From Amoeboaphelidium protococcarum X5 (Eukaryota; Fungi; Aphelidiomycota), in assembly GCA_023515725.1 (NCBI GenBank), contig JALDTO010000146.1, positions 806,001 to 870,000 on the forward strand: a stretch of 64,000 nt of DNA, given 5' to 3'. The notes under the pieces are model-generated. The model was given only the letters and a program-made list of their open reading frames with translations, searched no databases and had not been told where the DNA came from. This document shows, piece after piece, positions 177 to 8,302 of this stretch (position 1 is its first letter; every line of letters begins with the position of its first letter). Both the position numbers and the translations under genes were made by a program.

Positions 177-3100
177 TCATTTTAAATCAGCACTCTATCT
201 AAAGTACGAGTGGACAACTACAGAAATCTTTTGCATAAAGAGACTGACAGGGATCGACACGTCATCTCCCTTTTCACAGCGAGTCTATAATGCAACAGCC
301 AGATCGAAAAGCTTTGGAATATACTGTTAAATCTAGTCATGCTGATTACTTTAAGCCAAATGTTGATCATGCCAAGACAAATGGACAACTTAATACCAAA
401 TGATACAGACAACATTTCTCCAATTGTTAATATCGCGGACATGCTTTTACAGATCCGAATGAAAATCAATGTAACGCTTTGATATCAGTAGACATTATTA
501 CATAGTGTCATCAAAGTGAGAACCAGCTCTAGCAAATCTATCACCCAAATTACGATAGGAATTAAAGACAACGCAGATATAGAGACTCAGTGATATCGTC
601 TCCTGCTTAACCAAGTCTGGCATTTTTTGAACCACACCACTCGTTTTCAGGGCCAGCCGCAACTCATAATCTTCATTAAACGTCCTAGCAAACCGAAATG
701 ATGCAGTAATCTACGATAGCCAACGGTTTTAAAATTACTCAGGCATCAAGGTGAAGCAATCAGAAGGAAACAACTTTGTCTAATCACCAACCAAAGACTT
801 TAAAGGTTTGCCTCCAAGAATGTTCATGATAGGATCATCAATCTTAAACATCAAGTCTTTCATCATTGATAGTATCATGAGATGAACCGCGCATTTCATT
901 ATAGCTTTGTTGATGTTGATGGATGAGATGATTTATGCTTCATTCTCTGCTTCAACGTCAGTAAACTTTACACTACTACTACCACCGCCAGAGGTGCTTT
1001 ACTTGGGATATTGGAACAGATCATGCGGGAGAGTCTTTTTAAACAGCTGTTCCAGCCCGCCAGTAACACTTTCCCAACAGCCATTATCAAATTACTTGAA
1101 GTTTTGCACAATAATAGAACTGAATCCCAATACGGCAGACTGCGCCAAAGAGTCAGAATCACGATCCAGTAGTCATGAAAGACAAGCGATAACGTAGGAA
1201 AAAAGTTACTCATTTCCTCTGAGCACATCAAAGTTGAGCTTACACAACTCCAACAATCTTCTGATACAGTGAGAGTATAAGCTATCAAGTGAACTTTCTG
1301 GCTGACTAGGAGTTCCCTCTTGCAGATTCAAAATTGGAGATACAACCTTTTTCAATAAAATATACCACTGGCCATCGGCAGCATTGAACAATGTTATCAC
1401 ACTTTTCAGTTTGTCAAATAGCATATCCATCACTTTAAGTCGCATCTACTAATTCTGAGACTCCAAAATTATGTTGGTAAATCCAGAAAACAGAGGAATC
1501 CATTTGAAATGCAAATCATCATCACTGGCATGCGTCTGTCCAGATTTCTTGTGAAGATCGCCAAGTCTACTTATAGATTCCACCAACAGATTCAGCACCT
1601 CATTAAAGATCAAGCGATGATCGTCAACGTCTTTCAAAGTGCTGGCGGCAGAACTTTCTCCGTCTTGGCTCTCAAATCTTTACACAAACGATACGACACA
1701 TTACACGTAATCAACCAAGTACTCATCAACGACACCAGTATGATTCCTAACAATCTCTTACAAGAGTCCAAAGGCTTTTCTTATAATTTATATATCACTA
1801 TCAGTCTACTATGTTGAAATAGAAATCACCACAAATATCGATTTCCACCCAGATTATATCGATTTCTAGCGAGCCATGATAATCTGCGACAATGATTAGA
1901 AAATCATCTCTTTCGCAGCGACGTGCTTGCTATTTCTCATAATATTCTCAAACGGCCTCAAAGCTTCACAATGACCATCAAACTTCGACAACTCGGTGCG
2001 ATCCAAGTACTTCAAATTGAGCTGACGGAGTGCATCGATAGCCTGAATCGCAATGTCCACGTTAGAATGACAGCCAGCGCCACTAAAGTACACAGTCAAT
2101 ACCTTCCATATTTAAGACCACTCAAATCTGATTCTGTTCATATTGTAATGAGAAATCTCTACAACTTTCTGCAACAAATACAACCGGCCTTCATTGTTCA
2201 TCTCATACTACGATACTTGACAGATAGCTTCATAAAATTTCATCACAGACTAACCGCTTAATCGAGCAGTGAGAGCAAACAGCTTGTCAATACTAATCAT
2301 TGTCTCTTGCGACTTGAATCTCACAATAACAGACTGTAAGGAAGGGCGTCTCTTCAGCAAATCATCAACTTTAAGAATCGGAGGCTGAGATTAAGAATCA
2401 GAACTCTTCTTGCCAGATAATGGGGCTACAACAGCAACTTTCTGACCACTTCCATCCCCTATAAGCTGGAGCAGATCCAGCAAACTTAAGACAGATAAAA
2501 CGCGGCCCCAGCAGTCTGCGAGAAAATTTCCAAACTTAAAACTTATTTAAAGCATAGCTTTAAACGCAACAAAAGTTTTCGTCTACAAAGAAGCACCATT
2601 TACTATCGCCATTTTACAAAGACATTGTACGAGAGAATCCACTTCTTTCTAAAGATCCATCAGGCAGGCGGATTCTACTCCTACAGAAAGAGACTGTAAG
2701 CACAAGAGAACAACGTCTTGATTTTCATCTCCAAATGCGGATTACAAATTACTGATATCAAAGTCGATACTAACACTACTAATGACGGAGCATTCAGCAA
2801 ACGCACGTTCAAGCACTTGGAGAACTGGCTTAAAAGCAACCAAGAACATTGATTTAGCGTAATCAACGTGAGTGGCATTTTTGAACTTTGGAACAATGCG
2901 CTCCTAACCTTTTTTAAGCAAATTAATGGACTTTTAGCGATTGGAAGCAAAATCTTACCGAGACGAATCAGCTCTCTCTTAACCCCCAGCCGGAGGCACC
3001 TTGTCTTTACCATTTGTGCTACCACTACCGCCACCAAACAAAAATCCGATAGCTGTCATCTTTTTAATCTCACGCTAAACCTTCTCCTCCTCAAGGACAA

Positions 3101-5723
3101 TTTCATTAGAAGAAATCTGTTCAAAAATTTAACGCATAAAATCTTCAGGCAGATCACTAGCATCGTTGATGCCTCGATTGTTGCGTATAAAATCCTCCAC
3201 CGTCATACGATGCTTTACACTTTTCGAGTGCTGATCAGTATTGAGCATCATTATAGAGAATGCCAGCACATACGCCGTCTCAGCTTTGGCAAATATTTAC
3301 GGATTATTCTCACAATACCTAGCAGCAAATTTCTCCATAATCCTGTCAATCTTCTACGCTTCTCCCGGGAGACGAAACTTTTACAGAAACTGCCGAATGG
3401 CATCAACAAATCCAACATTGCTAAAGTCAAACATGTCGACAAAGGCGTGCATAACGTTGATATGGAACTCCTTCCCTTCACCGATACAGTCGCCAATACT
3501 TCTCTTGTTCAATTGTGGAGTTTTGAATAGAAAATCTGCGACACTCGTCACATCGCTGAGGACTCCAACCTCTAGCAAGAACTTCAATCCCTTGGGTCCA
3601 TTCTCATTGAATAACACAATACCTTGTTTAGTGGCTGATTTCATCTTGTTAATTCTATCAGAGTCTTCATAATTGGCTGCGACTGCATTACTAAACGCGG
3701 GGTTATCCACCATGTTCATTGCCTGCATGGGATCGCTTCGACTACCAACAATCACAGAAGACTGAGTTAACGACTACCGGCCTTTATATGATTCGTCTTA
3801 CGGTGAGGCTTCATTGCTATGAATTTCATTCTTAATAAAGAACTCTTACATATTGCTGGTGATTATTTCCAATAGACCAGACGACGGCTTCGATTTCCCA
3901 TCCATCGGAGAAGACACACTCTAGTCCTACTGATCCAAAGAGGATGCAATGCACTCACTTATCCATCCTCTTAAAGAGAAAACGATAGCCTACAAGCACT
4001 TGAGCGCTTTAATTCTAAACTTGCGCTCATTCAGGATGGTGGGGTCCGTCACATTGTTGTTAATATAGCCTAAGACGCCAACCGACAAATCTTTACTACT
4101 CTTATCGCCGGCAGACAAGAGCTAACCAGTTTAGCTGACAAGAACGCCATTACCGTTGGCACATTTAGTCAATATATAAACTAGACGCTCAAAAACACAA
4201 ACTAAGCCAACTTCGCAATCATAATTCAACCAAATATCAGCCAAAATTTTTGGATTAGAACACAATTTATGCAACGCATCTAGTATTGAATGCTTCAGGC
4301 GGTAAGTAGTGGATGGATGTTCCAGCAGAAATAGATAAATCTCATTAAATAAAATCTCCATTTCAGGCTTCAAAGGTCCACGAAACAATTTGACCAATAT
4401 CAAGAATACAGAGAGACTCAGATCAAAAATCGAGAACTGGTTCGATTGGAGCAAACTATTCTTGCTAATCGATAAAGTCACCTAAGTCCTAATCATTTAA
4501 ATATACGGATCTTCGCTCTAAAGAATTGGCCCAGAATTGGTTAGCACAGACAACAACATTTCCAAGCCCAAAGATCTGGCTCTTAGTGCAACAGCAGAGA
4601 GCTATTCCACAGTATTCGACGATGAGGCATTTTAAACTGTCTAATTCTTGTCGCCGCTCTATTTATCAACCTTCATGGAGAGTCTGCATAGAAATCGCAA
4701 AATAATAAAGGCATCCCGTTGAATAATGCCTTTGTAGTTCTGCATTGAAGCCGGTTCATAAGGATTATTAAGACGTGACTGCTCCTCCACAACAAACTGG
4801 ACACCGCCTTTCATTTATTGAGAGCTCCCACTCACTGATGAGCTTCCATCATCAGTATCGCCGCGACGTGGCTAATTCAAAGCTTCATTCGAATCCCTTA
4901 CGCACACCTTCTCCAACATACTGAAAACGTGATGACAAATCTGCATTAGACCGGCTCTTGCAGTAACTTCAACATTCGGATTACCACAATAAAGCCATAT
5001 ATTAGCACAACATTAAACAACTTTTAGCAGTGACAATTCGTGAATCTCACATCCTCCTCCATTACTACTCAGTTTTCCATCGCCGCCTTGACTTTCACTA
5101 GCAAAAGATTTGATTGAACTATTCTATGTGATAGCAGTCAGTAATAATTTGATAATTTATAAAAGTACTCCAGTCTCTGCTTAAATAAGCTTTTCATGAC
5201 CACCGGGGTTGCCAAGCAGAGGTGGAATAAGAACGGGAGACGCACTCACGATGCAGTGAATGATGTCGTCTATCAACATAGGCGGGTAACTGGACATTAT
5301 TCGCTTGCCGCCACTACCATCATCATCCTTCTTATCACCGGCACCATCATTGCTTTTCGACGTCGACTATTGCTTGGAAGAGGATTTATCATCGGGATCC
5401 TAGCCATCACCGGTTTGAGATTGGACAGGGTCAAGAAAAGCATCTCCTCTAAGGTTATTCGATGCTATGAGCTTCTATATCATATCCAATGCCAACTCCC
5501 TCTACTTTACAGACTAGGACGGATGAATGGCTTTCTTTAATACTCCCCAGTACTTATCACTCTCAGCTTTATGACTATTATTACCATGAGAGGAGCTGTT
5601 AGAATCAGATTAGACTTTCTCCAACTCTGCAACACTACTCTAAATCAAGGTGTACAGCTCCTTATTCCTCCGACCATCAACTTCTCCCTTAATCTTACTC
5701 AACGCAAACTTTGTGTTAATCAT
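177..5723 (-). CDS. SEC7: Large ARF guanine-nucleotide exchange factor, Sec7/BIG family (1848 aa, TAR=Gln, no intron needed)
   Basis: ATG 5723 to TGA 177 is a multiple of 3. Contains a DCB-like N-terminus (ELALDMIQKLIA), HUS motif (DIWLNYDC), Sec7 domain ([21 protein letters not shown]...FRLPGEAQKIDR) and HDS region (AIDALRQL...LRPFE). Confidence 0.93.
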
Positions 5724-5904
5724 AATGCAATTTAATGTAGAATATCAACCAACTCTGATGTGCTTAATGAAGAGAGAGAGAGAGAAGAAGAAGAGAGAGA
5801 GGAAGAGAAAGCTAAGAAACCACAAATCCAAACACTCGCTGAAACGGAAAGGACATCTCATTAAAACAATCGCGCCTTATCGTCCTTTCTTTCCTGCTTA
5901 AGTG

Positions 5905-6306
5905 GTTGCTCGCACACAGCTCTGGATGATCGTTCGTAAGGTATGTGCGTTCGTTCATTTGTTCACTCTAGGGTGGGAAACTATTCACTCAGGCATCGGA
6001 GCTACTAACCCTGCCCAATAAATTCACTACGCCAATCACAAAGTTACAATGTCTTGTATGTGTATTGTAGGCGGAAAGACATTGCGTGCCTTTCATTCAT
6101 GTGTGTGTGTGTGTGTGTGTTGAACATCGAATGTAGAAGTTTAGTCATGGATCTTTTGTGTACATTCAAGTAGGCCTCTTAAAAAAGGTCAGGCTTGAAT
6201 AAAAGTTCGCTTTGTGTACATCGGGGATTGTTCATGGTTTAAACTTTTGTGATCATTGTTCCCTTCAACACACCATTTGAGTGGATATTTCCCAGTGTGC
6301 TGCAAC
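5905..6306 (+). ncRNA. Candidate telomerase RNA core (template, pseudoknot and CR4/5-like domain); true ends unknown and may extend to about 6450
   Basis: Template CTAACCCT 6005-6012; pseudoknot stems 6033-6040/6059-6067 and 6047-6055/6076-6084; three-way junction with P6.1-like AAAG-TTCG-CTTT 6202-6213; long-range closing helices 5974-5991/6278-6294 and 5905-5917/6295-6306. Many G-U pairs favour the + strand. Confidence 0.72.
6101..6120. repeat. (GT)10 microsatellite
   Basis: Directly visible; its 3' part is complementary to TTCAACACAC at 6264-6273. Confidence 0.95.
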
Positions 6307-6538
6307 TCCCTCCTTTCCTCTTCTCCACTATATAACCTTTTCAAACTTTCTTAGAGCGTTTGCGTCTAGACTGTGTTCTTACCCGTTTTCATTGCTGGTG
6401 GTCTGAAACGCGCTTGTGAGATTGGATGGATTTTTCAATCTTTTCAACACTTTCGGCATTTTCTCACTTCAGTCTCTGTGTGAAAATTGGTCAAATCTTT
6501 ATTCATTCACTTATTCACACAATAGATCGATATTCCAA

Positions 6539-8302
6539 ATGTTGATATAGAAGAAGGGTATTAAAGGAGCCGCGGCGAATTATATCACGCGTACCAGAGC
6601 GGTGAGGAAGCTGTAGATCTCCTTGTCAGATTTCCGTAAGCTGTGCATTCTGAAAGGGATCTATCCAAGAGAGCCCAAGTCAAAGAAGAAGGCTGCACAG
6701 GCTGGTGTTGCGCTGGCCAAGGCTAAGAAGGGTGCCACTAGAGCGCGTTCTGGTAACACGAATAACACATTCTACTACGTGAAAGATATCTAGCATCTTC
6801 TACATGAGCCGGTACTGCACAAGTTGAGAGAGCGACACGCGTTTGTGAAGAAGATTAAGAAGGCCATAGCTAAGCGCGATTTTCATGCAGCAAATATTCT
6901 GGAGAATAATGAGCCCGTCTACACGCTGCACCATCTGGTTAAGGAGAGATATCCAACGTTCACTGAGGCCCTGATGGATCTTGATGACTGTCTTTGCCAT
7001 GTATTCATGTTTGCCACTCTTCCGCTGGACTATGGTAAGAAACACGATCATGATACCTTGACTCCGCAAAAGATTGAGAATTGTTAGCGTTTGTGCAACG
7101 AGTTTATGACTTATGTGATTAAGACTAATTCTCTGCAGAGTATGTTCTGCTCTATCAAGGGCTACTATTACCGCGCGATTATCAATGGAACTCCGATTAC
7201 GTGGCTGGTACCTCATGAGTTTACGTACACCCCCGTGATGACTTCGATCAATTCTCAAGTGGCAACTGTGGGTGGTGTAAACGCTGGTGCAGGTGCTCTG
7301 GATGTGGACATGCGCGTCATGTTGACATTCCTGGAGTTTTATGAATGTATGCTTGGCTTTGTGAACTTTAGATTGTTCTCTTCCATTGAGACTTCATATC
7401 CACTGGAACAGCGTGAACTCAGATGGACAATTGAAGATCTAGATGGTGAGTTTGATGTTAATCAGATGTAGAGAGTATCTAATCAAGAGGGGAAGAAGTC
7501 TGCTGATAAGATCCAAGTTTAGAAGGTGAAAGAAGTGGAGAAGAAGATTGGTGAGATTATTAAAGACACTGTGGAAGGAGATCGCGCTCTGGAGTAGTTT
7601 AACGCTGACGTTCAGTCCAATGAAAGCCCTCAGTTGGAAATTGACACTATGGAATCTAGCGCGCTATCTTCCGATGAAGTAAAAAGCGGATACAAGATAT
7701 TCAGTGGTCTGACTGTCAAGATCAATAGAGAAGTACCTAGAAAATCTACTCTTTTTATGCTACTTGCTCATGGTGCCAACGTTATACTTCCTTTCTAGTC
7801 TGCAGTATCATCCGGAATTACTCATGAGATTTGTGATCGTCCGCTTGAACATGTCAGAATGGAACCGAATCGCAAGTATGTTCAGCCTCAGTGGGTGTTT
7901 GATTCTATCAACCAAGGCAAGATCCTGAGTGAAGATTTGTATGCCGTTGGAAAGTCTCTGCCACCTCACTTGAGTCCATTCTATGACTATGTGTAGAGTG
8001 AGGCGAAAGTAGATGATATGGTTGTCACCGAGGCTGAAGTGGAAAAGGCCACTGAAAAGGTTGTTGTCAAAGCCACTGCTGCAGATGGAGCTGCTTCCAT
8101 TGATGCTTAGAACAAGTTGAAAAAGAGTATGAGTAAGGAGGAACGCGAAATGGCCAAGATGCTCATGTCCAACAAGAAGAGGAAGTTCTTGGAGCAGATT
8201 GAGAAGAGCAGACACCATCAGTAGCTCGCGGAAGATAAGCTAGCCCAGAAGCGTGCCAAGATTGCAATTGCCAAGCAAGAGTAGAAAAAGGTAAAGAATT
8301 GA
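6539..8302 (+). CDS. NOP7: Pescadillo/Nop7 ribosome biogenesis factor (587 aa)
   Basis: N-terminus [33 protein letters not shown] (Q=TAG); [41 protein letters not shown]. Confidence 0.96.

Follow-up and report, generated by a model that had tools for sequence, protein, structure and literature searches.

Telomerase RNAs (TRs) of opisthokonts are known from animals and Dikarya, and the ancestral state has been inferred across the gap (PMC8480181, PMC9564094, PMC9841428, PMC12506658). In the literature searched, which covered few subscription journals, we found no TR from aphelids, rozellids, chytrids, Mucoromycota or other non-Dikarya lineages, in line with a preliminary description of the present locus, whose author knew of none in an early holomycotan lineage. 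Amoeboaphelidium protococcarum is a parasite of algae, and aphelids are the sister group of fungi. We describe here an element of about 405 nt that is, with a probability we put at roughly 95%, the telomerase RNA of this species, a role that on the side of activity is predicted from sequence. The same identity had been proposed in the preliminary description, and it gains support from the telomere match, its uniqueness, an RNA contig, an snRNA-type promoter, conservation among alleles and an intact TERT.

The TRs of vertebrates and basal animals measure 312-559 nt (medaka PMC3950677; PMC8480181), a range into which the aphelid RNA falls. As in vertebrates, its predicted template/pseudoknot core would be closed by a long-range helix, and its P5/P6/P6.1 junction has the single A, the basal A-U pair and the G-U after P6.1, with U and G at positions 2 and 4 of the P6.1 loop and UUCG as in medaka (PMC3950677). 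Unlike vertebrate TRs, it is without a box H/ACA domain and its own 5' and 3' ends pair. Also, its P6.1 loop has 4 nt, its core is much smaller, the Rfam Telomerase-vert model gives no sequence match, and the template comprises 12 nt and specifies an irregular 11-mer, whereas theirs hold 1.5-2 TTAGGG repeats. With the TERs of Pezizomycotina and Taphrinomycotina (Neurospora PMC3592445) and of Basidiomycota (Ustilago PMC9564094, Malassezia PMC12506658) it has in common the two-domain layout, core-enclosing helices (here predicted), a short P6 and a 4-bp P6.1. However, those RNAs measure 900-2400 nt (Malassezia ~480) against ~400 nt here, and the aphelid RNA shows no predicted template-adjacent boundary hairpin, Sm site, terminal intron or sign of an mRNA precursor. 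An ill-defined alignment region, multiple registers and heterogeneous repeats recall the budding and fission yeast TRs with degenerate telomeres (PMC4993307), but here TTAGGG alternates with CAGGG and the irregular repeat is combined with a compact vertebrate-type scaffold. Like the snRNA-type TRs of plants, ciliates and Hymenoptera (PMC9841428), the aphelid RNA is short and has a promoter in common with snRNA genes, whereas it has no U-rich 3' terminator and its promoter matches that of U2, U4 and U5. The P6.1 junction further separates it from plant TRs. In plant TRs, as in the aphelid RNA, a terminal helix joins both ends. The aphelid RNA is outside the H/ACA, Sm and intron-fused TR subtypes.

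A template boundary made by a core-enclosing helix has been reported for vertebrates only (PMC4993307); the aphelid helix resembles this type, with no covariation and with a competing fold. We tentatively suggest, at rather less than even odds, that a vertebrate-type scaffold (core-enclosing-helix boundary, medaka-like P6.1) is joined here to a biogenesis route new to opisthokonts, in which a free-standing snRNA-type transcript has a terminal helix to protect its ends and matures with neither H/ACA nor Sm nor cleavage by the spliceosome. If this is true, the aphelid RNA may show a state preceding the addition of the animal H/ACA and the fungal Sm or intron routes. With a TR from the sister group of fungi, one can ask directly if CR4/5 with P6.1 is an ancestral trait, which kind of boundary element is the oldest, and if maturation by H/ACA and by Sm was added later. 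This TR also offers a seed model to find TRs in other early-diverging fungi.

Locus, alleles and flanking genes

The window, i.e., the whole stretch of DNA analysed, is 64 kb long (C146:806001-870000) and belongs to the 23.6-Mb assembly of A. protococcarum. An epimerase encoded near the locus shares 97% identity with an A. protococcarum protein. The features of the locus are listed in Table 1. The 5' end of the RNA gene (5900) was placed by promoter spacing and its 3' end by the terminal helix, and the length is 375-407 nt over four alleles. The flanking SEC7 and NOP7 frames stay open only if TAA and TAG are translated as Gln, the known code of this species; protein searches used stop-free pieces, and read-through of the frames under this code was inspected separately. 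A second, homoeologous copy of the locus lies on C312 (two per assembly), and two further copies with unchanged gene order (SEC7/NOP7 synteny) are present in GCA_023515745.1, giving four alleles in total, all of one species.

A GA-rich run (5772-5806) and the proximal half of a GT run (6101-6110) are expanded in the window allele and missing from the other three; the GT run is conserved and paired only in its distal part, within the distal arm. No distant homologue of the RNA was found by way of the epimerase neighbour, which is not syntenic in Amoeboaphelidium occidentale, by a search with a stop-free NOP7 piece (no close fragment in that species), by a search of representative sequences (other taxa only), or in a metagenome scan for the P6.1 pattern, whose 20 matches, none with template or flanking similarity, were taken as chance.

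Table 1. Features of the candidate telomerase RNA locus (window coordinates)
Feature	Position	Strand	Evidence
SEC7 family ARF-GEF gene (flank, divergent)	1173-5723	-	protein search; synteny
GAAAC motif	5841-5845	+	76-124 nt upstream of U2, U4, U5 too; variable spacing, weak
TATA-like box, TAAAA at -38 from 5900	5861-5866	+	U2 -37, U4 -39, U5 -40
Pyrimidine motif CTTTCTTTCC at -15	5885-5894	+	CTTTCT in U2 -13, U4 -15, U5 -13/-15
Predicted telomerase RNA gene	5900-6306	+	X12 RNA contig on 5909-6303, fold, allele lengths
Terminal helices, 5' strands (partner 6295-6307)	5904-5917	+	pair probability 0.97-1.0; paired bases invariant, 4 alleles
Variable 5' side hairpin	5919-5974	+	two G.U pairs Watson-Crick in other alleles
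Long-range helices (partner 6278-6293)	5975-5991	+	allele comparison, pair probabilities
Core-enclosing helix, 5' strand (partner 6086-6090); candidate template boundary element	5992-5996	+	invariant, no covariation
12-nt template CUAACCCUGCCC, encoding GGGCAGGGTTAG	6005-6016	+	complement of contig-end repeats
Predicted pseudoknot stem 1 (6033-6040 with 6059-6067, one bulge)	6033-6067	+	sequence; invariant in 4 alleles
Predicted pseudoknot stem 2, P3-like (6047-6055 with 6076-6084, 9 bp)	6047-6084	+	allele change, shuffles
Template-distal arm, P4-like helices to three-way junction	6111-6276	+	three helix substitutions, all pairing kept
CR4/5-like three-way junction (P5 6158-6163:6216-6221, P6 6164-6200, P6.1 6202-6213)	6158-6221	+	alleles
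A6201, 4-bp P6.1 with basal A-U, UUCG loop, G6214-U6215	6201-6215	+	invariant in 4 alleles
Pyrimidine tract, then TATAACCT (6331-6338); candidate 3'-end signal	6307-6338	+	motif shared with U2, U4, U5
NOP7/Pescadillo gene (flank)	6539-8302	+	protein search; mRNA contig begins near 6499

Telomere repeat and template

TTAGGG had been expected at the contig ends, and this expectation failed, as the assembly contains no run of three tandem TTAGGG. The real repeat, present at 14 contig ends (C146 included) with the G strand outward, is irregular and consists mostly of TTAGGG alternating with CAGGG. To judge from the literature searched (few subscription journals covered), no report of TTAGGG/CAGGG as a telomere repeat was found. 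The tracts are short in the assembly, 69-204 nt, and begin abruptly on unique sequence; CAGGG and TAG units abound in the proximal part, TTAGGG-CAGGG in the distal part.

The + strand sequence 6005-6016, CTAACCCTGCCC, is exactly complementary to the contig-end repeat. The locus had originally been chosen on structure and on 8 bases, 6005-6012, taken as a mouse-like TTAGGG template. Position and complementarity of these bases held, while the length did not: the template has 12 nt, since the telomere repeat is TTAGGG/CAGGG and not TTAGGG, and extends four bases further, to 6016. The identification gains from this correction: the four added bases, which match the repeat with a chance probability of 0.0017, played no part in the choice of the locus. 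With 12 nt against a telomere unit of 11 nt, the template spans more than one repeat unit, and it is invariant in 4/4 alleles. The 12-mer has 62 exact matches in the genome; telomeric tracts account for 59 (52 at contig ends and 7 in one internal tract on C98), the gene copies for 2 and a short inverted remnant on C205 for 1. A match somewhere in the genome is, taken alone, unremarkable, as the reversed 12-mer gave 2 matches and about one is expected genome-wide by chance; within the 64-kb window, 6005-6016 is the only 12-mer of the telomere repeat.

The variation of the telomere also sits where the template predicts. The G run following CA is expected to be fixed because it is copied from the template interior, and it has three G in 191/200 units; the G run following TTA is expected to vary because it spans the junction between synthesis rounds, and 1, 2, 3 and 4 G were counted in 6, 16, 53 and 4 units (three G in 53/79; Fisher 1.6e-9). 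Homopolymer errors are no explanation, as both classes of G run would be hit alike. GTTAGT read-through was not found in the telomeric tracts, which argues that synthesis stops at C6005.

Template and repeat overlap by one base, which leaves almost no alignment region; alignment is therefore weak, and the two CCC tracts allow several registers. We propose that TERT copies 6016 to 6005 into the repeat, stopping at C6005, and that the primer may then re-anneal in several registers through the two CCC tracts. A terminal G placed on C6016, C6015 or C6014 would give TTAGGG-, TTAGG- or TTAG-CAGGG, AG placed on 6011-6012 would give TTAGGG-TTAGGG, and a stop after the inner CCC followed by slipping back would give CAGGG-CAGGG; together these registers would yield the irregular telomere. 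The template-telomere pair is a compact system for the study of register choice, in which each repeat variant maps to one alignment, and the two-CCC template, if our reading is true, is a natural model for the origin of irregular telomeres. Straight copying of 6005-6016 does not produce 33 units of TA type. These are proximal (median position 0.21 vs 0.66) and are read as TAG-C in 15/33 cases, vs 6/79 for TTA units (P = 1e-5), TAGC being the complement of 6001-6004. They may stem from a rare register 5' of the boundary; the alternatives are one skipped A or an older template.

The genome contains two intact TERT genes (Pfam TRBD E 1e-24), whose frames of ~965 aa have RT motifs and catalytic aspartates and are open under the TAR=Gln code. 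In the telomerase that we propose, TERT would bind two domains of the RNA, the 99-nt template/pseudoknot core (5992-6090) and the CR4/5-type junction with P6.1.

Fold and conservation among alleles

All helices named in the preliminary description were recovered. The + strand folds at -125.8 kcal/mol (z = -3.94; 0/100 dinucleotide shuffles as stable) and the - strand at -95.7 kcal/mol, 30 less favourable. Core and distal arm are 95% invariant across the four alleles, vs 60-65% for the flanks, and indels are confined to loops and linkers, such as the loop of the 5' side hairpin, shorter by 8-21 nt in the other alleles. At substituted helix positions pairing is kept in 9/10 cases (P ~0.001-0.015, by assumptions and counting of 5979), for a helix set derived partly from folding of the window allele. 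The helix with 5974-5980 as its 5' strand exists as described, with its distal pairs broken in 3/4 alleles (5979 A>C). Pair 6161:6218 is U-A, U.G or C-G and is the only one changed on both sides, because the homologues come from a single species. In strain X8, two further G.U pairs become Watson-Crick, U5985.G6284 as U-A and G6174.U6189 in P6 as G-C. We read these allele substitutions as support for the helices, short of covariation proof. Comparison of the syntenic gap, which the preliminary description had recommended, thus showed template, pseudoknot and P6.1 conserved in 4 alleles, with change on both sides limited to one pair.

The predicted pseudoknot lies 3' of the template; both stems are present and sterically plausible, with one compatible change only (C6047>U in stem 2, which keeps pairing as U.G). 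Neither stem shows real covariation among the four alleles of one species. Stem 1 is a weak 8-bp duplex of -4.5 kcal/mol, and a perfect 9-bp stem like stem 2 arose in 43/5000 shuffles of the 99-nt core. Loop 1 (6041-6046) contains two U, and a U.A-U triplex would therefore not be canonical; human TR has 4-5 U in its pseudoknot loop (PMC3592445). The short stem 1 and the minimal U-rich loop had both been conceded as weak points from the start, and they stand. Stem 1 could be lengthened by CGC/GCG (6030-6032:6071-6073), but this would shrink loop 3 to 2 nt, and we therefore do not count the extension as part of the pseudoknot.

The core-enclosing helix proposed earlier ends 8 nt before the template. 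It is present, but in folding of the naked RNA (stem-2 strands held out) it loses to a template-sequestering hairpin, in which 5992-5995 pairs with 6012-6015 inside the template with a probability of 0.65. This helix and the pseudoknot triplex are computational predictions only. An alternative boundary helix, 5918-5924:5997-6003 (-8.9 kcal/mol), is possible; it crosses the long-range helices, and the allele changes favour the 5' hairpin.

In the CR4/5-like junction, the single A6201, the basal pair A6202-U6213 and G6214 after P6.1 agree with the consensus (PMC3950677). The P6.1 recognized in the preliminary description has the 4-bp stem and the loop U and G, at positions that fit the 5-nt NUNGN consensus, although its UUCG loop is of 4 nt and not of the canonical 5. 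The medaka P6.1 loop is UUCG plus a flipped-out U, deletion of which leaves activity unaffected (PMC3950677). The pyrimidine of P6, U6171, lies in a small internal loop after 7 bp rather than in a clean bulge.

Expression, promoter and 3' end

Metatranscriptome contigs were mapped to the second genomic copy with 3.4 kb of context. Two environmental studies, independent of the assembly, contained RNA of the element, as contigs that prove neither ends, strand nor level of the RNA. A freshwater metatranscriptome (X12) gave one 409-nt contig (384 aligned letters, 1 mismatch) corresponding to window positions 5909-6303, with no contig of A. protococcarum on SEC7 or NOP7, and a wetland RNA run (X13) gave one contig on 6112-6295 only, the flanking genes being uncovered. 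RNA of the element, which the preliminary description had wished to see confirmed as a + strand transcript, is thus present among the contigs. The loose end of the freshwater contig at 5909 is the TruSeq read-1 adapter, and read 1 was therefore antisense to the + strand of the window; this direction fits a + strand RNA if the library was dUTP-stranded. In X9, where coverage is as in mRNA sequencing, SEC7, NOP7 (from ~6499) and the RNA element each have contigs of their own; those on the element are of low depth, and one of them extends ~125 nt past the 3' helix, to 6429.

For promoter comparison, the U2, U4 and U5 genes of the genome were located. Nowhere else in the 64-kb window do TAAAA and the pyrimidine motif stand together as a pair; the remaining three alleles have TTTAGAA, a weaker TATA, instead of TAAAA. 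The TATA-like box lies between the arms of an 8-bp inverted repeat (5848-5855 with 5883-5890), which also overlaps the pyrimidine motif. The downstream motif TAA(A)CCW, picked after inspection of the sequences, lies 13-42 nt downstream of U2, U4 and U5, against a background of 0.5 per kb; a pyrimidine tract likewise follows all three genes, as it does the element. In the element there is no box H/ACA arrangement (the last ACA, at 6268, is within a helix, and the 3' end pairs with the 5' end) and no free Sm site (AU4-6G; two near matches are both paired), whereas U2, U4 and U5 of this genome carry an AU5G Sm site. No 3' intron was recognized, with no GT within 47 nt of the 3' end and no conserved splice consensus in the 4 alleles, and these alleles have no conserved T5 at the 3' end.

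As to biogenesis, we consider it probable that the RNA is a separate + strand transcript of ~400 nt, which RNA polymerase II would produce from the snRNA-type promoter and which would be trimmed to the terminal helix. U2, U4 and U5 are polymerase II genes in other eukaryotes, and the spacing of the promoter equals theirs, which speaks against a polymerase III transcript that would start, like the TRs of plants, ciliates and Hymenoptera, from a type-3-like promoter and be trimmed to the same helix. Such transcription is unlikely, although the TATA-containing promoter, the 5'-3' terminal helix, the lack of an internal run of 5 T and the lack of both H/ACA and Sm site would suit it. Three alleles also have a T5 run 95-125 nt downstream, close to where the extended X9 contig ends, that could serve such transcription as well, but this run is T4 in L055 and the loose end of the contig appears to read through it. 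U6 was not found genome-wide with the Rfam model or an ACAGAGA-box pattern, and may be split by introns or divergent; as RNase MRP was not found either, there is no clear polymerase III promoter for comparison. Release of the RNA from the 5' portion of a transcript that also carries NOP7, in the way of the mRNA-derived TER of Ustilago, seems quite improbable. NOP7 lies on the same strand with its start codon 232 nt downstream, and the extended X9 contig runs in its direction; against this, the element and NOP7 contigs of X9 are separate, X12 contains the element without NOP7, and the element has its own snRNA-like promoter and downstream motif.

Other possible identities

The element might be a structured non-coding RNA of another kind, such as RNase MRP, RNase P or some unknown RNA, with a telomere-like 12-mer by chance, and about one such 12-mer is indeed expected genome-wide. 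Size and terminal helix are like those of RNase P/MRP, and RNase MRP was absent elsewhere in the genome search. However, the element is without CR-I and CR-V, which form P4, and has no Rfam match, while a P/MRP-type gene with GGAAAGUC was located on C98; moreover, a chance 12-mer explains neither P6.1 nor the sites of telomere variation. We hold this identity to be very improbable. No telomerase model scores in the Rfam scans, which gave chance matches only. A telomere scar in an untranscribed intergenic stretch, folding by chance, is largely refuted and barely deserves consideration: internal telomeric remnants do occur, on C98 and C205, but the template is a single unit, invariant in 4 alleles and set within a 95%-conserved fold, and RNA contigs come from two environmental studies.

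The P/MRP-type RNA gene (C98:1147722-1148018) scores below the Rfam cut-off (E 0.005) and has a CR-I, GGAAAGUC, with a complementary 3' strand; it is without the CTTTCT promoter motif and has the same downstream pyrimidine tract. On the same contig, of 1.97 Mb, an internal telomeric tract of ~150 nt (C98:1311760-1311930) lies mid-contig, 45 kb from a TERT gene, and represents either a healed end that became linked to other sequence or an error of assembly. At C205:67220-67270, G-strand units are followed by inverted, C-strand units, an arrangement that resembles a small end-to-end fusion scar.
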